From: Zootoca vivipara | Lineage: Eukaryota | Assembly (NCBI RefSeq): GCF_963506605.1 | Contig: NC_083294.1 | Coordinates: 33,108,001 to 33,172,000, forward strand | Reading direction: 5' to 3' | Length of the DNA: 64,000 bases | In this document: positions 217-22,219 of the stretch, piece after piece | How the letters are laid out: the number at the start of each line of letters is the position of its first letter | Numbering within the stretch: position 1 is the first letter of the stretch | The notes under the pieces: model-generated | Seen by the model: the letters and a program-made list of their open reading frames with translations, nothing else | Database searches by the model: none | Told to the model about the DNA's origin: nothing | Position numbers and translations under genes: made by a program

Positions 217-412
217 CAGTAGTACCTCTGGTTACAAACCCCAAACCATTCTTAACCTGAGGAGCACTTTCGCTAATGGAGCCACCTGCTGCTGCCGTGC
301 CACCAACGCACAATTTCCATTCTCATCCCGAGGCAAAGTTCTCAAAATGAGGTACTACATCCGGGTTAGCGGAGTTTGTAACCTGAAGCATTTGTAACCC
401 GAGGTTTCACTG
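217..412. mobile_element. pogo/Tigger-like MITE
   Basis: TA|CAGTAGTACCTC...GAGGTTTCACTG|TA. Interior is related, in inverted orientation, to 4656-4894. Confidence 0.8.
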
Positions 413-700
413 TACTGTACAACTTCTATCATAGATTAAAATCAGTTATAACATAGGACTTTCTTTGAGCTGTCTGATAGCAATCTCTTCTTGGTATTTT
501 CTTCAAAATAGAGTCACCTTCAGTTTTTGAATAGTTAAAGAAGAATACTAAAATTCAGGCTTCCTTATGCCGATACTAGACCATTGCTGTTTCCTGACTC
601 CCATCTGTTTTATCAGGACATGCACAGAATTTCCTGCTGAAATGAAACAGAAGGCTGCACAACTGCAATACCTCATTAATTGCCCTTAACACCTTTTATT

Positions 701-888
701 AGGGAGGGACAATAACTCAAAAATTGAAAGCATGCTTTGCATGCAGAAAGTCCTATGTTCAATCACTGGCACCTCCAGTTAAAAGGATCAGGCAGCAGGG
801 CTAGGAGAGGGAGCACTACTGGTCACAATAAAGAATACTGGATGTGATACATAGACAGGCTGACCTGGTATAAAGCAACTTCTCATGC
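701..888 (+). mobile_element. degenerate tRNA-derived SINE (Squam3-like)
   Basis: gcatgctttgcatgcagaaagtcc...gttcaatcactggcacctccagttaaaaggatcagg...tataaagcaacttctcatg resembles the recalled Squam3 consensus. Confidence 0.7.
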
Positions 889-1321
889 TGCTATTAGAAT
901 GAATTGTGAAACCTGTGTTCCTTTGTTGGGACGGTCTTAGGTTCTGGACCTTCTCTGTCAGACATAGGTGCTCAGAGCAAGCATTACATTCATATTATTT
1001 CTATAGGGCATGTGGTTTTGCTCTATGTCTTCAGATAGATAGATCCTATGGTAAGGAAGGGACAATATGAGCTCAATCTCATTCAAGACACATGCAGAGA
1101 GAAGACTGCAAAGAACAATGGCATGACAACTGGGGGGGGGGGACAGGACGGGACGGACAAAAGTGGTTCCCTATAGAAGATTTTAGGAATAAGAATGAGA
1201 GCCTGCAGGAAACACCAACATAGAATGCAGAAAGTTAAACAAATCCATGCTTCTACAGTAACTAAAGGAGGTTTGCAATCCTGCTGTAGCTAGACCCTTA
1301 CATCTGGATGTGGACAAACCA

Positions 1322-2668
1322 TCCTATATAATAAAGTGCAAGTGTCTCTGCGTCCAGATTCCCTGTGTCCCGTTTTCCGCGCTAATGCGCATGTGCCCCA
1401 GGGACACAGGGATTGGACGAAGAGACTGCAGGGGCACACTTGAAAACTTCCAGCGGCGTTGGACGGGACTCTCAGCGTTCTACAGCCTAACGGAAGGAGA
1501 GCAGAGAGACCCAGACGCAAAGGAACGAACGCCTCCCAGCATAAAGCCCTGAAGCCAGAAACGGCATTAGAGCGGTAAAGTTTCTACTATTGTTTTTAAC
1601 CCAATAAAATAACCTGGCACTTGGAAACAAAATGACTATGAAATATTGAAGCGCTTTTAGTGCCAGAGTAAACTGGAAACTAATGAATACCGGGGGAAGC
1701 GGAGAAGGAAAGGAAATTGTTCCGTTTGTAATCCAACATCGCGCAAGAACGCAAAGGGTTCGGCAATAAAAAGAAGGGGAAAAGATTGCTGCAAAGGAGG
1801 AAAACAAACAACACTCGCAGTCTGTGTGTGTGGAGGAGAGAGAGAAAGTGGGGCCCCAAAACACCCTGGAAAATAGAACTGAGATATAAACGGGGAGCTT
1901 GGAAAAAGACTGTTCCCAGACTAAAGCAGAGGTAGAAGCAGCGGAGACATTTTAAAACAGAGTCGGACTTTCAGAGGAAAAAGAATATAAATCACTACCT
2001 GAAACAAAGATGGAGCAGTGTGGAGCGATGAAGGGTTGGGAGTACTGAGCAAACAACTGAGAGGAAAGGAGAGAGCGCATACAAAGAGAGACACCACGAT
2101 CGGAAAAAGGAAGAAATTGCAGACAGCGACAACAGAGGAACAACAGGAGAATAAGAGTAGAAGGACTGAGTAAACCAAAAGATTGGAGCAGCGACACCGG
2201 TGGTTGGACCTGGAACTACATGTGAATAAAATGACGGCAACAAAGAAAACAGTGTACGGTGCGGCAACTAGCCAACAGGGGAGATATATAGATTCCCCCC
2301 TTCTTTTTTCTGTTGTGTAGGTTTTCTTTCTGTATTTTCTCCCCCCCCCCTTTTTTGGTTCTTGTCCCCCCCCCCCGCTTTGTCTTTTACATTTTTGTAT
2401 TTTCGATAGCTATTGATGGTCGATATGTCTGTATATGTGTATCATTTGAATTTATAACTTTTAAAACAATAAAGAATTTATATTTCAATGTGGCCAGAGC
2501 CCCCTGCAGGGCACTTTGGGCAGCCTCCCGAGGCAGGATCGCCGCGCTCCTCACCGCCGCCTGCTGCTGCTGCTGCTCCTGGGCGCTCCTTCTGGCCTTG
2601 GAGGCCCAGCACCCTTATCAAACTCACTGTTCTAGCACCCGTTAATTTAACGGGCTTCAAGATACTAG
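1322..2668 (+). mobile_element. non-autonomous Helitron, complete, with cargo
   Basis: A|TCCTATATAATAAAG 5' end; subterminal hairpin CCCGTTAA-T-TTAACGGG (2638-2654); CTAG|T 3' end; no TSD. 5' end shared with the copy ending at 44235. Confidence 0.85.
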
Positions 2669-3056
2669 TGAAGTAATAATATGCGACCCTGCATTACAGT
2701 GCTGAGAATAATAATTGATTGAGTTAAAAATGCATTAACAGTTTACCATTACCGTATATTCTTCTGTAGTACAAACAGCCAAACTTCATCCCACGACATA
2801 ACCCTAAAGCAAATCTTTTGTATGTTGATTGACTCACAATGTCTGTTGTTGACATAAAACAGTAGCTTAGCTTTTGAACATCTTTCACAAAAGCTCATCT
2901 GCCTCCATTGCCAGTTGACAAAACTATCAATTTCTGGTCAAATGTTTGTTGTGCATTTAATTCTACGGTGCAATGTGTCTTTATTAACTTCTTTAAAATA
3001 TTTTAATGAAAGACAGAAAGAAATCAGTGGTACAATGGACAATTATCCTAACAAGC

Positions 3057-3060
<4 letters not shown>

Positions 3061-3107
<47 letters not shown>
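3061..3107. repeat. (GA)n microsatellite
   Basis: Seen directly. Confidence 0.98.
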
Positions 3108-3109
<2 letters not shown>

Positions 3110-4655
3110 GGATAGGAAGGGCATTCAGAATGAGTTGAGACAGGTGTGAAGGACCTAAAAGTATAAACAGAAGGGACATCTGGAGTGAGACTTGACTTGA
3201 CCATAGCTGCAGGTTTGAAGACAGAAATTTATATTGTCTTCAGTCCCTGCTTCAGTCATTGTTTGTAGGCCTGCCATATTATAAGGCAGGGATAACCCAC
3301 CACTATTATCCTTCTCCCAGATACTTATTTCCCAAGATAAAAACCACATTCTGCAGAGAAATGCCACTCACAACTTCTGCTTAACACTGTACTCCACCTC
3401 CTTTTCTGTATATAGCTTATTCAGTATTTCAGTAATCCTTAAGACTAACTGTCCTAAGGTTTTTGTTTCGCTCAATAAATATATATTCTCTTCACTCCAA
3501 AAATTGTTTAAGTATGACCAAGTGATAACTCTGTGGGATCCATATTTAAAGTTGGCTTTCTATGAGTTGTTACCAGTGCTGGGTTGTAACCATGTTGCAG
3601 ATTTATGTTTAAACATACTTCTTGAATATCCCCACCTACCACACTTTTGGCTGCTTCTTAAAAATGTGTTAAGGTATAATGTGAATGATGATTGTGTAAA
3701 ACAATGGAATTGCTTGTATAATTGCAGCAGTATATCCTTCATTTAGTCTCTATGGCACAGATGCAGTTATACCTACCATTCTATAGGACTTAACTGTACT
3801 CAGTGTGTACAAACTAGCTAACATGGGAAAAGCCTGAAGACAGCAATCATGTAAAAATATATTTAGGAAGAAAAGCAGTAATATCATGTTTCATTATTTC
3901 CTAAGAGAAAGAAAAGGTTAGCGTATGATTATACCCCCAGTATTTATTTGTCTTTAAAACAAAGAAACTGTCACACAACATAAGAATTAAAGGCATCAAA
4001 AGAACAAATACAAAATGTTGGTCAGGAGCACCTGAGGTGCACTTGACCATAAAATACTTATTTCATCATTCTCTGTAAAATGATGTCACTTCATAAGACA
4101 AACACCACACGGTTTCTAAAACACGAGAACAGCCTGTGGTGATGAAATCTGTGCAGGATGCATAATTTATCCATTCAATGCCAATTTGAGATATGGGATA
4201 TAAGAAAGTAATTCAAAGCAGTAAGAAGAAACACAAGAAAACAAACATGGTTCACAGAAGTAATGCCCTTTTTTCAGAATACCAAGTCTCTCTGTCCTGA
4301 AGGAAGGAAACAATTTTGATGATAATCAATACCTGCAGAAGCTCACAAAGCAACTGAGAAAGGTCAGAGCCTATACTATCCACACAGCCTTCTTTATAAC
4401 TTGCTTTCTTCTTGATGCTTACTGATAATGCAATAATAACTTATTTATAGGGAACATTTTGTTGGAAAATCATATGTGAAGAGGAACTGCAGGACCCAAA
4501 GGGATTTTTCTTGTTTTCAAGTCACTGATAATGCTTTGATCAGAATAAAAGAAGTTAGTTTCTTCTTCTAACATTGATTGTCTGCCCCCCCCCCCTTACA
4601 AAATCTTTCATACATCACGATGACTTTTAAAAACCCAGAACATGTGAAACAAGTA

Positions 4656-4894
4656 CAGTGGTACCTCGGGTTTTAGAACAGCCCTGTTTACGAATGATTC
4701 GGTTTACGAACTCTGCAAAACTGGTAGTGTCCCGGTTTGCGAAGTTTACCTCTGTCTAAGAACGGAATCCGAATGGTGGAAGGGGACCAGCAGAAGGAGG
4801 CCTCATTAGGGAAAGCGCGCCTTGGTTTAAGAATGGTTTCGGTTTAAGAATGGACTTCCGGAACGGATTAAGTTTGTAAACCGAGGCACCACTG
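4656..4894. mobile_element. pogo/Tigger-like MITE
   Basis: TA|CAGTGGTACCTCGG...CCGAGGCACCACTG|TA. Confidence 0.85.
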
Positions 4895-5149
4895 TACTTG
4901 GTTACATTTTATTATTTGTCTATTGGGGTAGGGGTGGTAGGTTTCCTTGAAATTTCCTTTGAAGATTATTCAATCTATTTTGGCAACTTTTCACCAGCCT
5001 TGGAAGTTTATTTCATTAAATGTAATATTTAAACCAAGAAACAATTACAGGACAATTATATATACTATTAGATCTGTTTTGATGCCAACACTGAACATAT
5101 TGATTTCATTCTTATATAATGAAAACAGTATATTTTAAGTGAATAAGAC

Positions 5150-6901
5150 TGTGTTTGTGTGAAAAATGCAGAGACCAGGCAGTGCACCAGACTTAGAGTA
5201 AAGCAATTTGGGGTTTCTAGTTGGGCCAAGAGATTGCAAAGGTATCCTGAGCTGATGCAGACCATACATTAACTGCCAAGGCTGAGCATTGAAGCTGCTT
5301 CCTAAAACCAGCCAGCACAATGTTAATCCTAGTAGTAGAAGAATCTTGTAAATATCAGTATCAGTCACCTTCATAGCGTTGCAATCTTGTTTTCTATTTG
5401 GTGCATGGTGTGTGTCAGCTACAGAACTCAGATCATTGATATCATCTGAAAGGTGGTTTTGATGGATGTCAGACAATCACACGGGTTAGTACTGCCACCT
5501 GGCATCAAAGGCAAGGGATGTTCAGGGTCGATGAGTATGCAGCTACTTCCTATCCTCACTCGCTGAGATGTTATGGTGAAGAATATTAGACTTTAGGCCC
5601 AACTTGAAGCCACTATGCAGGAAAGATAGCAGCTGTTGCACAATCATGTTATATGGAGAAAAACTTTGAGAACGACACAGTGGGGGGAAATGGACTGCAA
5701 GCTTTCATAAATTCTGTTTGAAGATGGCCGATGTGATAATAGTAGCAACCACTTTAGGACATTCATATCTATGCTCTGTGTTCCACTTGGATTGATAACA
5801 GATTATGTTTGACCCAGCTGAAAAGAAGATAGGATTCTGCCTGAAGATGGGAGATTTCACTGTAGAGCTGTCAGTGTGAATGAGCACTGATGGAAGTAGA
5901 GAAGGGCAAGGCACACTGCCCACAACTCAAGCCAATTAATGTTGTGGGCAGATTCTATCAGAGTCCATAAACTGTGGTAAACTTCCCCTAGCAGGGGAGC
6001 TCTCCAGCAGGATTGTTCCTGGATCTTGGCACAGACACCCTTGTGGAGATTCTGGAGAGGTGTCAACCAACAACAATATATGTGGAATGATGGAGGCAGT
6101 CAAAGGAGCATGTACCAGGTATTGGAAATGTGTGACTGGAACAGCAATAGGAATTACTGAAGCTTAAAAGTGTGGTGGTAAGCCCAAGGTACAATCTGGG
6201 TGGTTAATACAAAGAGACTCTGGGCTCTCACCAGAAGTATGACACCTGCAGAAGGCCTTTGCAACAGTGAATGAGCCATTTGCCAAATGGCCACAATCTG
6301 TTCTGGAGAAAAAGAAAAATGACGGCAATGTGTCCAGAATGGCACTCAGGTATATATGCTGCCTCATAATCAGGTGGTTCTTTTCCGTGTGTGTGTGTTT
6401 GTGTTTAGAAACCTGTGGTCCCTCAGGGCTGAAAGAGATTCAAATATAGTTTGAAGCATGATGAAAAGTGTTCACTTGTACCAATAGACCAGTGGTTTTC
6501 AAAGGATGTGGCAAGAGAGGATGGCAAGTATGGTGGAGAGATTCAAGGACAATCAAAGAAATATTTAAACATTTCAGTGTTGCCAAAGTGTCGAAAATGG
6601 CCCTCAGGTGTAGATACGGACTCACAGCCAGGTGGCTCTTTTCAATGTTTTTTAAGAAATCCGTAGTCCCTCAGAACTGAAAGTGTGATTCGAAGCATGA
6701 TGAAAAGTGTTCACCTGCACCCTTTGCAGCTGAGGAAGACTGGCCAGGTTTCCCCCCAGAAGCTGACTGCAGACGTCATTGGAATGGCTGTCCGTTCAAG
6801 GATGGGTGGAATGGGCAAGTATCATGGGCCCTACCAAAGGGGTGTCACCATGGAAAAGGTTGTGATATGTGTGATATCGAGTTAAGAGAAGATATAATAA
6901 T

Positions 6902-6934
<33 letters not shown>

Positions 6935-8200
6935 AATAATTTATACCCCGCCCATCTGGCCGGGTTCCCCCAGCCACTCTGGGCGGCTTCCAACAGAGTA
7001 TTAAAATACAGAAATCCATCAAACATTATAAGCTTCCCTAAACACGGCTGCCTTGAGATGCTTTCTAAAGGTCTGGTAATTGTTATTCTCTTTGACCTCT
7101 GGTGGGAGGGCATTCCACAGGGCGGGTGCCACTACTGAGAAGGCCCTCTGCCTGGTTCCCTGTAATTTGGCTTCTCGTGGCGAGGAAACCTCCAGAAGGC
7201 CCTTGGCACTGGACCTCAGTGTCTGGGCAGAACGATGGGGGAGGAGACACTCCTTCAGGTATACTGGACCGAGGCCGTTTAGGGCTTTAAAGGTCAGCAC
7301 CAACACTTTGAATTGTGCTCGGAAACGTATTGGGAGCCAATGTAGGTCTTTCAGGACGGGTGTTATGTGGTCTTGGCGACCGCTCCCAGTCACCAGTCTA
7401 GCTGCCGCATTCTGGGTTAGTTGTAGTTTCCGGGTCACCTTCAAAGGTAGCCCTACGTAAGAGAGCATTGCAGTAGTCCAGAGTGACAGTAGTTAGAATA
7501 GGCTTGTGCTTCTTCTGGGGTCTATCAAGACCTTGAAGGCCTTGTCTCCAAACAGGTTAGTTCCCAAATACAAAGCTATAAATAAGTTTATTCTGAATGT
7601 ATTATCTGCACCCCAATGACAAAGCCAGAGGATTTGATCTGTGACAACATCATCAGCCATTGAGTGGGCAGTAAAGTGTGTGGCATCCAGGGTTACATCT
7701 TGCATGAAAGTGGCTGCTCTATGAAGTTGCAGCAAAGCTTTTCAAACCTGCTCTGGTTCTTGATATTGATCATTCAACAGTTCATCATTAGGAGATGATA
7801 AACTAAAGACATCACTGTAGCCAGTTTTGACACTAAACTGCATATAGTTGGAAAGGGGGACTACATATTCCTTTCCCCTTACTCACTTACAGCTATCAAT
7901 ACAATCTAGCCCCTATGTCAGGGAAAAGCAGCAATCTGGTGAGTGTGTGATGGTGGCAGGGAAGAGGTTGACCCAGGAGAAGGCCCAGCAATTTTGGGGG
8001 TTTGGTGTCACCCATGAGGCAGGATAGGAGGAATAGAAAGGGTCAAAGCAGTCAGATATGGAGGTGGGGGCACAAGTCGTGTTGCAAGTGGAGGAAGGGC
8101 CTGTTTGGGTGAGTGGCAGGCTAGTCAAATCCCTGCAATCCCCTGTCTCCTAGAACTAGGAGGGGCTTGAAGAAGGAAGCAAAATTACAATTTCCATGCA
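5150..8200 (-). mobile_element. heavily decayed DIRS1-type (tyrosine recombinase) retrotransposon, interrupted by an L2; boundaries approximate
   Basis: Motifs in DIRS order on the minus strand: gag-like AHSMADDVV..ILWLCHWGAD..LFGD (~7720-7545); RT FLKNIEKSHL..LHLRAIFDT and IVPWA (~6680-6160); RNase H NINWLELWAVCLAL / VLIHTD (~5960-5870); recombinase N-terminus LLSFLHSGFKLGLKSNILHHNISA (5638-5561). Confidence 0.7.
6895..7481 (-). mobile_element. L2 LINE 3' end, 5'-truncated and young, with (AAC)n/(AAT)n tail
   Basis: Uninterrupted ORF 7019..7468 LQLTQNAAARLVTG..HITPVLKDLHWLP..FKVLVLTFKAL, typical of the L2 ORF2 C-terminus. Confidence 0.9.
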
Positions 8201-8957
8201 GAAAAAATAAATAAATCTCCAATTGGTTGAGCATACTCCATCAGACAAAGGCACATAAGCTCGGTTAATACCATCTATGGAGATGCTAGAAGTATGTGTT
8301 CATGTGTATCTGATGCTGTAAGTGTGTGTTTTCGTCAATAAAGAATTAGCAGTCGGTCGTTTGTTTTCCTTGACTGGGTGTGCTCAAGACACCCCCATGA
8401 GTGGAAGAACAAACAAGTTACAACCATGGACAAAGAATGCCATGTGAGATGACTGACAACACATTGTACCTTTCTGTTCCTTTGGCCAACTGATTTGTCC
8501 CAGAGAGGGTTCTAATGTGGTAACACAATGAACAAACCAGTCATAAATAAGTTGCAGCACAGCAGTTAATAGGAGTTAAGCTTGGACTACAGATGTGCAC
8601 TACCTCCCAACCAACAACCATGCCTCATTTTTACAAAAGTGTCAAGTATCTTTGAGTACCTCCAATTACTTGATTTCAAATTATTTTTATGTTCATCTAT
8701 CAAAATTAAAGTACAGAAAGGTGGTGATTTCCAGTTACAACAGATTTGTAAAAATACAATAAAAATATGTTCTGTTTTCTTAAAATCATATGGTTAAAAT
8801 TGCATGTAGTGAGATTATACTCCGAGAACTGTTTGCAGACTTGGTGTATGCAAATTGCAGATAGTTACACAACAGATTAAGGCTTGCTGCTGGCAATATG
8901 GATCAACATGCTCAGCAAATGGCTGAGCAGTATTGATAATTCTAGGCAATTTGAATA

Positions 8958-10290
8958 CCGTGTTTCCCCCTTTTTAATACGTACTCAAAAAGTAAGGCAT
9001 GGCAGGGTTTTTAATCGTTTGAGAAATGTAAGACATACCCTGAAAATAAGCCATACTTCCGCGACGTGCGGAGCAAGACCACTGAGCGCCTCAGCCAGCT
9101 AGCGGGACCCAGCACGGTGGCCACAACAGGAGGAGGAAGCCTGCCGGGTTGGGTCGGTGCCCGGAAGCGGCGGCGGCTGCTGCAGCGCCGATAAAGCGTG
9201 CAGCAGTGCCGCACAGAGCACCGAGGGCACAAGCCAGCAGGACCCAGCTCCTGCAATGCCGGCCGTGGCAGGAGGAGGAAGCCTGCCAGGTCAGGTTAGC
9301 GCTCAGAAGCGGCGGCGGCTGCAGCGCTGACAAAGCGCGAAGCAGCGCCGCACTCTCTGTGTGCGTGTCCATCCCTTTCTCTGTGTGCGCGCGCGTCTCT
9401 CTCTCCCTCCCCGTGCGTCTTTCTCTCTCTCCCCCCCCTTTCTCTGTGTGTGCGTGCGCGTCTCTCTCTCTCTCTCCCTACCCGTGCGTCTTTCTCTCTC
9501 CCCCCCTGTATGTTTGTGATCACGTCTCTTCCCCCCCCCCCCGACAGAGAAAAGGTGCCACGCAGGTTCCTCTTCGGCTTGTCATTCAGCTGCCCCGGCC
9601 TCCTTGCCGAGAGCTGATGCCGCTCCTCTCCCCCTCCTTCCCTTTCCCCCTCCCTTCCCTTCTTTCCGTCGGTCTGTCAGTTGGGGTAGCGCGCGCCAGA
9701 GGCGCAGGCCCAAGCCTCGTCCCCCTCGCGCTTCCCTCACGAGCGTCTCGGAGCGGGACGGGTCCCGGCCTCCCTCCTCATTCCCCAGCCAACATGAGAG
9801 AGCCTGGGGAGCAGCCTCTATACCTCCGCGCGCACACCCACACACCCGGCCGCCTCCGCCTTCGAAGCCATGGGAGATGAGCAGCCTCCCAGTGCTCCCA
9901 CCCAACCGCAAGTGCTTTGACTGCGACCAGCGCAGTCCCACCTACACCGACATGAAGGTGGGCAGCTTCGTGTATACCTCCTGCTCCGGCATCCTACGAG
10001 GTTTAAATCCACCTCACAGAGTGAGGTGTCTGTCTCCTAGGCAGGTGGCCATCCAGCCTCTGCTTAGAAGCCTCCAAGGAAGGAGAGCCCTTGATTCAGG
10101 ATGGGGAGGAGGGAAAACGAATAGAAGAGGCAGAAAATGCGCGCGGAAGAGAACGCCAAGCGTCCTGAGCCAGTGGGACCCAGTTGTGCCGGCACTTAAA
10201 AAAAAAAGACACCCCCTGAAAATAAGCCACCGTGTGTTTTTTTGAGGCAAAAAAGTTGTAAGACGGTGTCTTAAAAAAGGGGAAACACGG
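8958..10290. mobile_element. non-autonomous Tc2/pogo-like TIR transposon carrying captured host sequence (Pack-TIR)
   Basis: TA|CCGTGTTTCCCCCTTTTTAATAC...GTCTTAAAAAAGGGGAAACACGG|TA. Subterminal motif AAGACA..CCCTGAAAATAAGCCA near both ends. CpG-rich interior, no transposase. Confidence 0.88.
9871..10024 (+). pseudogene. captured fragment of an AGFG1/AGFG2-family ArfGAP (HRB/RIP) gene, zinc-finger region
   Basis: EMSSLP(VLP)PNRKCFDCDQRSPTYTDMKVGSFVYTSCSGILRGLNPPHRV versus recalled human AGFG1 DMTGLPHNRKCFDCDQRGPTYVNMTVGSFVCTSCSGSLRGLNPPHRV. Third zinc-ligand Cys is Tyr. Exact paralog not resolved. Confidence 0.9.
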
Positions 10291-11321
10291 TACTCCCTGA
10301 AGGCAAGCATCCTATTCTGGGCCATGTTTTTTTCATCCATCCCTCATGATGCACTTAATTACAACAACCCACAAGTAGCCACTGGGCAAGACATAAGCAA
10401 GAGCCCAATCTAAGATGGGTGAAAGTGAGAAAAGGTTGGTGGGAAATTTCTGTCTCACATATAATTCTATACACATGTATAAGACAGCTATGAAAAACAA
10501 ACAAACCATGACCCACGTGAAAAATGTATTGGTATTCAAAATCTAGGGAAAAACTCCACACAACAGATTGCATTTTAAGACCTACAAGCAGATTTCAATT
10601 TATGGAAAGTGCAATATTGCCTCTTCCTTTCCATCACAATACTTGGCAACACCCCTCAACAAAATGCTACTCCTGAAGTTGGGGATCACACTATTTCCAA
10701 CTTGACACTTTTACTCCCCCCCCCCCAAAAAAAATCTATTCCATAACATTTTAGGATTTATTTGCAAAAATGTTTTTTAATATATATATTTTTCAAATTA
10801 TGAATCTCTAAATGCATTTTTATACTTTTCCTCTGAATTGAGAACTGCAGCTGGATGAACAAATGAATAGAAATCAATTGACCCCCACCACAGAAGTGGA
10901 AAAGTTTTCATTTCTGCAAGCACCTCTTTGAATCCAATTCAGCTGTTCTTGCATCATAAAGAGACTTGTGTGTGATATGACGCTTACACACAGTTCCTGA
11001 TTTCCTGATAGGTCAGAGAGTTCCATGCTTTCCTTAAGCTCTACTTAAATCAATGGGGCTTAAGTGCATATTAAGTATACAGAACATTATTAGACCATGC
11101 TAAGAAGAAGCTAGTTGTTTATTACTGTCATCCTATCAGAGGCATCTAAAATTTTAAATAGTTTTTTTAACAATTAAAGAATATCGCCTAGATACCGGTA
11201 GGAGATATGGCACCTTATAAACTTTATGAAAACAAATCACTGTACATTTTTTTTTGGGGGGGGGGATTAACAAAAATTCCAGCTGTAAATTAGAATATTA
11301 GTTAATAATCTGAACTAGTTG

Positions 11322-11457
11322 NNNNNNNNNNNNNNNNNNNNNNNNNNNNNNNNNNNNNNNNNNNNNNNNNNNNNNNNNNNNNNNNNNNNNNNNNNNNNNN
11401 NNNNNNNNNNNNNNNNNNNNNNNNNNNNNNNNNNNNNNNNNNNNNNNNNNNNNNNNN
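11322..11457. other. assembly gap (136 N)
   Basis: Run of N. Confidence 1.
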
Positions 11458-11775
11458 GAACACCTCGGTTTATGAATTTTCAGTTTATGAATGCCGCGGA
11501 CCCATCTGGAACAGATTAATTCACTTTCCATTACTTTCAATGGGAAAGTTCGCTTCAGTTTATGAACGCTTCAGTTTATGAACAGACTTCCGGAACCAAT
11601 TACACCCATGCTTCAGTTTATGAACGCTTCAGTTTAAGTACTCTGTGGACCCATCTGGAAAGGATTAATCCACTTTCCATTACTTTCAATGGGAAAGTTC
11701 GCTTCAGTTTATGAACGCTTCAGTTTATGAACAGACTTCCGGAACCAATTGTGTTCATAAACCGAGGTACCACTG
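11458..11775. mobile_element. pogo/Tigger-like MITE with internal ~150-bp tandem duplication; left end runs into the gap
   Basis: Right end CCGAGGTACCACTG|TA. Same family as 21898-22219, inverted. Followed by (TA)n to ~11832. Confidence 0.85.
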
Positions 11776-11779
11776 TATG

Positions 11780-20725: not shown

Positions 20726-21897
20726 GTGCCAAGGATAGACTGGTGATTGGTTGTTGCCACAGAAGCAGAATTCTGTGTAAGGCAGAAAAAAGGGGTAATA
20801 AAAGATACCATGGTGTCTGGAGCAAATATGTGCAATCTGACTGTTATCCATGTTCTCTTTCCCTTTTTTCATATAAGGTTGAACAAGATTTTGAATATTA
20901 CAAGATGGACAAATTATGCATATTTAATTCCACCCACCTATAACAGGGAGCAAGATTGAAAAAGAAGTCAGAAGAGTTTAAACACGTACAGTTAAACAAT
21001 GAATTACATCTCCAATATTTGAAGTTAAAAAGTAAGAACTGTATGAAACACTCTAATTTAAGAGCCTGGTGACCTTTTGGTACCAAGATATGAAAGAATA
21101 AAGATTGGAAATGAAAACGTGGGTTTTGTTTCTTTTAGAAATAATTTTTCATCTCTGGAAAGTATAATATGGTAATTCATCATCATTCAAAGAAATAAAA
21201 AATACACTACAATTTAAGCACTTGTGATTTGCAGAGTTCATGCTATAAATGCTTTGGCCCTATCTTGGCAAAGAAACATTTTGTTTGATTCTTCCTTCAA
21301 GGATTTTCAGAAGAACCTTGTATAAAACATATCTACACTGGAAAATATACATATTTCCAATACTGCAGATAATAAAGCCTTTGTGGGAAGCATTCTATTA
21401 TTTTTTCTTCTGAATATATACCGTACATCTTTGCATTCTTTATTCTCTACAGTAGACTCAAGTAAAGGCTATAACTAACAGGCAGTACTCATGGTTTGCA
21501 TTTATGAAACCACACAATTTCTATTTAATGAAAAACTCTTCTCTATTAATATTGCCAGGATGGTTGCATTGAGTCATTGACAAAATTTGGGTGAGACAGA
21601 AACATTTCAAATAAGAAAACTATGACTACTGCTCTGTCTTTGTATAAGCAAGTTTGCTACGGCTCTACTTCCTATGAGCATTCATATGTGTTCAAAATAA
21701 GAGACAGGTAGATCAAAGTTTGCATTTATACAAACCAAAATTAAACAAGTTAAGAAGAACCTTGCTGGATCAGGTCAGAGGCCCATCTAGTTCAGCACCA
21801 TGTTTTCATAGTGGCCTACAATATTCCTATGGGAAGCCTGAACACTGGACCCAAGGGCAACAGCATTCTCCACTTGTATGATTTCTAGCAACTAGTA

Positions 21898-22219
21898 CAG
21901 TGGTACCTCGGTTTACAATCACAGTTGGTTCCGGAAGTCTGTACTTAACCTGAAGCGTACTTAACCTGAAGCGAACTTTCCCATTGAAAGTAATGGAAAG
22001 TGGATTAATCCGTTCCAGACGGGTCCGTGGAGTACTCAACCTGAAGTGTACTTAACCCAAAGTATGAGTGTAATTGGTTCTGGAAGTCTGTACTTAAACT
22101 GAAGCGTACTTAACCTGAAGCAAACTTTCCCATTGAAAGTAATGGAAAGTGAATTAATCCATTCCAGATGGGTCCACAGTGGTTGTAAACCGGGGCGGTT
22201 GTAAACCGAGGTATGACTG
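21898..22219. mobile_element. pogo/Tigger-like MITE nested in a CR1-like fragment (~21750-22270)
   Basis: TA|CAGTGGTACCTCGGTTTAC...GTAAACCGAGGTATGACTG|TA; internal dimer. Confidence 0.88.

Follow-up and report, generated by a model that had tools for sequence, protein, structure and literature searches.

Cut-and-paste transposons are believed to capture genes at the DNA level, and RNA-templated repair has so far been shown mainly in yeast and human cell assays. We describe here a 1333-nucleotide (nt) non-autonomous transposon that carries a fragment of the host gene AGFG1 spanning an exon-exon joint, located at positions 8958-10290 of a 64,000-nt stretch of the Zootoca vivipara genome (RefSeq assembly GCF_963506605.1, contig NC_083294.1, positions 33,108,001 to 33,172,000 of the forward strand; hereafter the window, position 1 being its first letter). 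The closest described elements are the Pack-TIRs of animals and the Pack-MULEs of plants, non-autonomous inverted-repeat transposons in which fragments of host genes have taken the place of the interior. For Pack-TIR cargo, template switching has been proposed as the source (Tan et al. 2021, PMC8277862); that study surveyed 100 animal genomes, discarded intronless cargo of multi-exon parents by design, as suspected retrocopies, and reported no more than four multicopy cases in vertebrates (PMC8277862). Bat Helitrons are rolling-circle elements in which the mRNA pieces are mostly 3' ones, in some cases accompanied by poly-A and target duplications, and their retrogene fragments without poly-A or target duplication have been read as captures of existing retrogenes (Thomas et al. 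2014, PMC4224331). In human cells, double-strand break repair templated by RNA has been demonstrated to delete whole introns (Jalan et al. 2025, PMC12065846; PMC11390984).

On sequence grounds the element at 8958-10290 would be classed as a Pack-TIR by its inverted repeats, its target duplication and mobility, its host-gene inside and the lack of a transposase of its own. It shares with Pack-TIRs and Pack-MULEs the replaced inside, a GC-rich patchwork cargo from a gene start, the multicopy state reached by transposition, and transcription. Unlike the Pack-TIRs described so far (PMC8277862), its AGFG1 cargo crosses an exon-exon joint without the intron, and it combines tens of cargo copies with a segregating insertion. 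With the bat Helitrons (PMC4224331) it has in common intronless, RNA-derived pieces of a host gene inside a DNA transposon that amplified them; in contrast to them it is a cut-and-paste element with a TA target, and it holds the 5'-most part of an mRNA plus upstream sequence, with no retroposition hallmarks. The precise absence of an intron from DNA, without hallmarks of long interspersed nuclear elements (LINEs), is the signature of spliced-RNA-templated repair in the work of Jalan et al. That work concerns human cell assays and tumours and a gene's own locus, whereas the AGFG1 joint is ectopic, lies in a germline transposon and has a mechanism that we infer. The element is a concrete test case for whether spliced RNA can template the repair of transposon breaks: a recently active, multicopy vertebrate element with a cargo that spans a splice junction, is free of retroposition hallmarks and contains upstream sequence as well. 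Since the insertion is segregating and the cargo transcribed, its history could be reconstructed from copies within one species.

The AGFG1 fragment and its exon 1-exon 2 joint

All search queries were contiguous reference sequences. Positions 9871-10035, read in the frame starting at 9871, translate to WEMSSLPVLPPNRKCFDCDQRSPTYTDMKVGSFVYTSCSGILRGLNPPHRVRCLS. Within this stretch 9874-10024 form a single frame that corresponds to AGFG1 residues 19-65, and a search of solved structures returned the AGFG1 ArfGAP domain in PDB 2D9L/2OLM (the HRB/RIP ArfGAP zinc-finger domain) with an E value of 5e-22. The alignment is gapless from LP.NRK to HRV and runs unbroken across ...SCSGIL-RGLNPPHRV, the continuous reading on which the original prediction, made from the letters alone, was built; beyond HRV the likeness is weak (RCLS vs KSIS). 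Pfam ArfGap scored 38.8 bits (cut-off 28.7), with the match confined to profile positions 9-57 of 117. The fragment covers no more than residues 19-65 of a protein of ~440-500 residues (isoforms), and the 3' part of the mRNA is absent. Exon 1 is represented by codons 19-56, up to the first two bases of Leu56 (9874-9995, + strand), and exon 2 by its first 29 nt, encoding RGLNPPHRV (9996-10024, + strand), in which 9/9 residues equal lacertid AGFG1 57-65 and the likeness may extend to ~10027.

Compared with an annotated lacertid AGFG1 (...EMSSLPPNRKCFDCDQRGPTYTDMTVGSFVCTSCSGILRGLNPPHRVKSIS), the fragment carries G36>S, C49>Y (codon TAT at 9973-9975, the third Cys of the CX2CX16CX2C zinc finger) and a 9-nt insertion of three codons, LPV. 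These were the damaging changes listed in the original prediction, and all are real; T43>K (9955-9957) is an additional one, and most other genomic copies keep the Thr base at position 9956. Further upstream, 9867-9882 (+ strand) reads gccATGG followed by GAGATGAGC. Relative to the AGFG1 reading, the ATG at 9870-9872 lies in another frame, 9871 being the first base of a Trp codon. The lacertid AGFG1 N-terminus used for comparison is MAASAKRKQEEKHLKLLRE-MSSLPP, and no trace of AGFG1 residues 2-18 was found within the 64-kb window. The gccATGG is likely the native AGFG1 start codon, fused to codon 19 by a deletion of ~50 nt (codons 2-18) that would have shifted the frame. With its zinc finger incomplete (third Cys to Tyr), its ArfGap domain partial and its ATG out of frame, the AGFG1 piece is a dead fragment, unable to make an ArfGAP protein. 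A full-length AGFG1 query found no other AGFG1 exon in the 64 kb, so the fragment is isolated and not the gene, and the idea that the cargo of 8958-10290 might be a true AGFG1 locus was rejected on the same result.

Annotated AGFG1 is present in lacertids, and sequence comparison identifies AGFG1 proper as the parent type of the fragment. P0169, an open reading frame (ORF) on a contig from a public collection, carries MAASAKRKQEEKHLKLLREMSSLPPNRKCFDCDQRGPTYTDMTVGSFVCTSCSGIL, and its exon-1 peptide shows 100% identity with annotated AGFG1 from Podarcis muralis, P. lilfordi, P. raffonei, Lacerta agilis and Zootoca vivipara, and from many further sauropsids. The annotated AGFG1 proteins that match P0169 run on as ...GIL-RGLNPPHRVKSIS or ...GIL-RGLNPPHRVKSISMTTF. 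Six independent ORFs of AGFG1 exon 1 on unspliced contigs, P0169 among them, lose all AGFG1 similarity at one residue, right after SCSGIL. In P0117 the SCSGIL is followed by WVRAGGGG and then by 200 GC-rich residues (on 12 Logan contigs, the longest 10.5 kb), in P0146 it is followed by WVAWTW, and in P0147, P0165, P0169 and P0171 by a stop. Half of them (P0117, P0165 and P0169, 3/6) are of the sauropsid type with TYTDM, and P0117 agrees with the window at 31/34 residues up to GIL, with no match beyond. The read-through, LW or L-stop, is what CT/GTGG and CT/GTGA or CT/GTAA would yield, and would fit a GT donor directly behind the second base of the Leu codon. In the window the same codon is CT/A, split at 9995/9996.

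Because the six ORFs break after SCSGIL and the annotated proteins continue, the AGFG1 family has an intron at this place and the cargo is without it. That exon 1 ends inside this Leu codon was part of the original prediction, and the six unspliced ORFs that cease to resemble AGFG1 there bear it out. The window thus joins exon 1 precisely to the first 29 nt of exon 2 with intron 1 missing, the joint at 9995-9996 (+ strand) reading GGCATCCT up to the boundary and ACGAGG behind it. Base composition changes at the same place. Over the 41 codons before 9995/9996 the GC content at third codon positions (GC3) was 0.88, and over the 11 codons that follow it was 0.27 (Fisher p 2e-4); overall GC fell from 0.61 to 0.45, confirming the sharp passage from GC-rich to AT-richer codons noted earlier. 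Such a GC3 drop would be expected of an exon 1 in a CpG island and an exon 2 elsewhere. A further hint comes from P0001, an annotated AGFG1-like protein of the fish Sinocyclocheilus (XP_016328461.1) with an internal repeat LRGLNPPHRV...LGLYDDKSS. The repeat probably stems from a duplication of exons 2-3 in annotation or assembly, and its beginning at LRGLNPPHRV would fit an exon start at RGLNPP. As another boundary we considered a tract ending at a cryptic donor, AGA/GTGAGG; it was rejected, as the exon 2 likeness seems to continue a few bases beyond, the codons being back-read from protein.

Many contigs from two independent DNA runs cover the bin that holds 9995/9996, as do RNA reads from two further runs, and in that bin no joint was listed for the DNA contigs or the RNA reads, nor was there a loose end among the matches listed. 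That the exon 2 piece is a chance resemblance or an assembly artefact is hardly credible on these data. It is just 29 nt long, and the insertion allele was not seen in two DNA runs, which show an empty site there; against this stand the agreement of all 9 residues with AGFG1 57-65, in frame and at the exact boundary, and the coverage of the bin with the joint in the DNA and RNA runs. It is also very improbable that intron 1 was lost from the parental AGFG1 of this species and that the fragment is a plain capture of genomic DNA. The evidence for the intron does come from sources other than this species' own locus, yet the break after SCSGIL was seen in all six contig ORFs, of which the three sauropsid-type ones are identical to lacertid AGFG1 in exon 1, and the GC3 drop suggests two exons in regions of different base composition, lying apart in the genome.

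The transposon, its patchwork cargo and its transcripts

Inverted ends, a TA target-site duplication, an exact empty site and thousands of family copies uphold the DNA-transposon setting. The element is flanked as GAA-TA/CCGTG...CACGG/TA-CTCC, with the copies of the TA duplication at 8956-8957 and 10291-10292, identified from the flank sequence and the empty-site contigs. A TA target duplication would place it with the Tc1/mariner-pogo type. The left terminal inverted repeat (8958-8980, + strand) is complementary at 21/23 bases to the right one (10268-10290, - strand), and CCGTGTTTCCCC is exact at both ends; the inverted pair was found as 28 nt at 89%, and its 14-mer TACCGTGTTTCCCC, also exact at both ends, would be expected 0.18 times by chance. 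The left part of the backbone (8981-9353, + strand) contains two ~140-nt tandem units, 9076-9214 and 9215-9353, that match each other at 82-87% and hold the direct repeats D5, D6 and D11. The right part (10146-10267, + strand) is marked off by a loose end at 10146 and by joints to 10198/10199, includes an A-run at 10198-10207, and is connected to the left backbone units by repeat D8. Units of this kind make up 9076-9353 and 10146-10197, and the cargo sits inside one of them. Joints 9080>9171 and 9210>9173, together with records of contigs that go back, suggest that family members differ in the number of units. No transposase was found, the five longest ORFs scanned giving only ArfGap in Pfam, and there is no second copy of the element or of the cargo in the 64-kb window.

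The empty site was recovered in two whole-genome runs from different studies (X1 and X9). In each, one contig joins 8955 directly to 10291, with three letters that fit both sides and depths of 50.5 and 28.7, equal to the flank depth. The exactness of this site means that other individuals lack the insertion or have it in the heterozygous state. The insertion is recent and segregating, and the transposon family has been very recently active in the species. Summed contig depth over the inverted ends was 1e5-1e6 (1.5e5-2e5 for the left end) compared with ~30-55 in the flanks, which implies thousands of family copies; depth over the left backbone was 1e4-2e5. Most family members join 9278-9281 straight to 10198 and lack 9279-10197, and joints to 10198/10199 appear in RNA reads as well as in DNA contigs. 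Reads and contigs were compared with the window at 80% likeness, and the matches listed are dominated by the high-copy inverted ends and by a 46-nt repeat in the cargo.

The cargo is a mosaic of 792 nt (9354-10145, + strand) set into a backbone unit. Depth falls to 4e2-1e4 over it, and the contig loose end at 10146 is the uninterrupted backbone unit of other copies. The first piece is a CT-rich, internally repeated tract (9354-9545, + strand, direct repeats D1-D4) that is possibly still AGFG1 upstream sequence; frame +3 from 9498 has weak similarity to the CT-rich leader of P0169. It is followed by the AGFG1 5' leader, possibly including promoter (9546-9870, + strand), which is CpG-rich with a GC content of 0.67. 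Here the upstream read-through of P0169 aligns EKVSRRF...SFS.PG at 9546-9596 (tblastn, E 6e-5) and also PRA..APLP...ERDG at 9571-9760 (tblastn), and the spacing of the EKVSRRF block to the ATG is colinear, at 309 nt in P0169 and 324 nt in the window. Behind the exon 1 and exon 2 pieces come a filler of ~14 nt (10028-10041, + strand), between the end of the AGFG1 likeness and the start of an abundant repeat, and then a 46-nt piece of that different, very abundant interspersed repeat (10042-10087, + strand, ggccatccagcctctgctt...ggaaggagag, depth ~3.5e5). On either side of it, before 10040-10046 and behind 10087, hundreds of contigs and reads have loose ends that share one consensus. This repeat is abundant in RNA too, in both orientations. 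The last 58 nt (10088-10145, + strand) gave no match. Pfam found no family besides ArfGap in the cargo ORFs, and Rfam gave no match.

The edges of the AGFG1 tract show no A-run, and neither does 10024-10145; the one at 10198 belongs to the transposon backbone and is common to cargo-less family members. No direct repeats were found at the 9354/10145 or the 9546/10027 edges. The earlier statement that neither poly-A nor target-site duplication surrounds the fragment holds, then, for the edges of the AGFG1 tract, and needs amending for the transposon, which has its own TA duplication.

Other copies of the cargo exist in the genome. Summed depth over 9880-10026 was 364-5940, against ~30-55 in the flanks, and 5-8 distinct contigs cover position 9956, which together indicate tens of AGFG1 cargo copies. 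Two joints in run X9, 9841>10078 and 9548>10058, each with 7-13 other letters, mark family members that keep the AGFG1 upstream tract without the coding part; these variants are either internal deletions or independent assemblies of the cargo. A protein word search with the 213-residue ORF found no ORFs of sister copies, and among the matches listed there were no parental AGFG1 reads that break at 9995 (DNA) or at ~10024 (mRNA).

There is transcription from at least one sister copy. In two RNA-seq runs, strand-specific reads cover 9684-10026 (depth 7-16) and 10114-10173 with the first mate on the + strand; almost no reads have the opposite orientation, and fragment starts pile up at 9723. The reads differ from the window copy at 9 fixed places, show no listed change at the Tyr codon and share the Lys base at 9956. 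Because this base is kept, they come from a sister cargo copy and not from the AGFG1 gene. A sense transcript from the captured promoter would fit best, as an antisense one would find no poly-A signal at its end. The pile-up at 9723 possibly reflects activity of the captured AGFG1 promoter.

Origin of the spliced joint

A switch from exon 1 to exon 2 at the DNA level, exactly at the splice boundary, is very unlikely; the joint must have come by way of spliced RNA. Such a cargo is unusual for cut-and-paste elements. The original prediction proposed that capture used an mRNA or cDNA template or a pre-existing retrocopy. The part of that proposal that concerns the spliced joint stands, the parent family having an intron that the cargo is without; the upstream sequence, possibly untranscribed promoter in part, may reach beyond what a simple mRNA template would provide.

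We infer a template-switching route. A break would have occurred inside the transposon, and repair or replication synthesis would have hopped between several templates; the patchwork of the cargo would be a consequence of this hopping. One of the templates may have been AGFG1 mRNA or its cDNA, which would have given the exon 1-exon 2 joint, and from there synthesis may have passed to homologous genomic DNA and run into the promoter. Afterwards the transposase of the family would have mobilised the composite element in trans, giving rise to tens of copies. Direct use of AGFG1 mRNA or cDNA as one template is the account that we tentatively favour, although with something short of an even degree of confidence. 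The edges of the cargo, without poly-A or target duplication, and the presence of only the 5'-most part of the mRNA speak for this route.

Several observations weigh against it. The intron is deduced from contig ORFs and annotated proteins rather than from the Z. vivipara AGFG1 locus, the joint is supported by just 29 nt of exon 2, and an older retrocopy could have served as donor. Moreover, at least 324 nt before the ATG are AGFG1-like, while the RNA reads of the sister copy begin at ~9684-9723. If this is the native transcription start, at least 140-180 nt of the cargo are untranscribed promoter, and a second, DNA template is needed. Such a promoter portion, if untranscribed, would not be supplied by an mRNA or a retrocopy alone.

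The main rival is that LINE activity had earlier made a processed AGFG1 retrocopy and that the transposon captured its 5' part as DNA, RNA being involved only in the earlier step. This would explain the missing intron equally well, it has a precedent in the pre-existing retrogenes taken up by bat Helitrons (PMC4224331), and the absence of poly-A and target duplication would be expected if the inner part alone was copied. The donor would, however, have to reach at least 324 nt upstream of the ATG, while LINE-made copies are usually 5'-truncated (PMC4224331), and the promoter poses the same difficulty as for the mRNA route. No copy of this kind was seen, although no search aimed at one was made. 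We regard capture from a retrocopy as possible and, on balance, rather unlikely. A LINE-made retrocopy inserted in place was rejected: the intron is absent, but so are a poly-A, a flanking target duplication and the mRNA's 3' end.

A spliced joint next to promoter-like DNA would also be accounted for if the element had taken up a genomic stretch from the promoter through exon 1 and intron 1 into exon 2, and if recombination or repair with a spliced transcript of the element itself had later removed the intron precisely. Transcripts of a sister copy of the cargo exist, and RNA-templated deletion of a whole intron is known (PMC12065846). This order of events requires an intron 1 short enough for a small element, yet P0117 reads at least 600 nt of intron without reaching exon 2, and the read and contig joints listed include no intron-bearing sister copy. 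Loss of the intron after capture is, in our judgement, quite improbable.

Returning to direct use of RNA, a more specific form of it would make the joint a natural germline footprint of RNA-templated break repair. Spliced AGFG1 mRNA would have been reverse-transcribed from 29 nt inside exon 2 back through exon 1, after which synthesis would have slid onto the homologous DNA of the genome, perhaps where an R-loop covered the CpG-island promoter, and taken in untranscribed promoter too. We consider this detailed scenario doubtful. Were it true, the outcome would be a cassette of promoter plus spliced exons spread by a transposon, and promoters prone to RNA-DNA hybrids may be preferred templates for repair.

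Other features of the window

On the - strand, 7019-7468 hold an ORF of 149 residues (...HITPVLKDLHWLPIRFRAQFKVLVLTFKALNGLGPVYLKE...) that may be the C-terminal part of a reptile LINE ORF2. Positions 11319-11460 are a run of N, either an assembly gap or a masked stretch. Beside it lies one of the two 295-nt arms of an inverted repeat, 11483-11777 and 21896-22190, which match at 86%.

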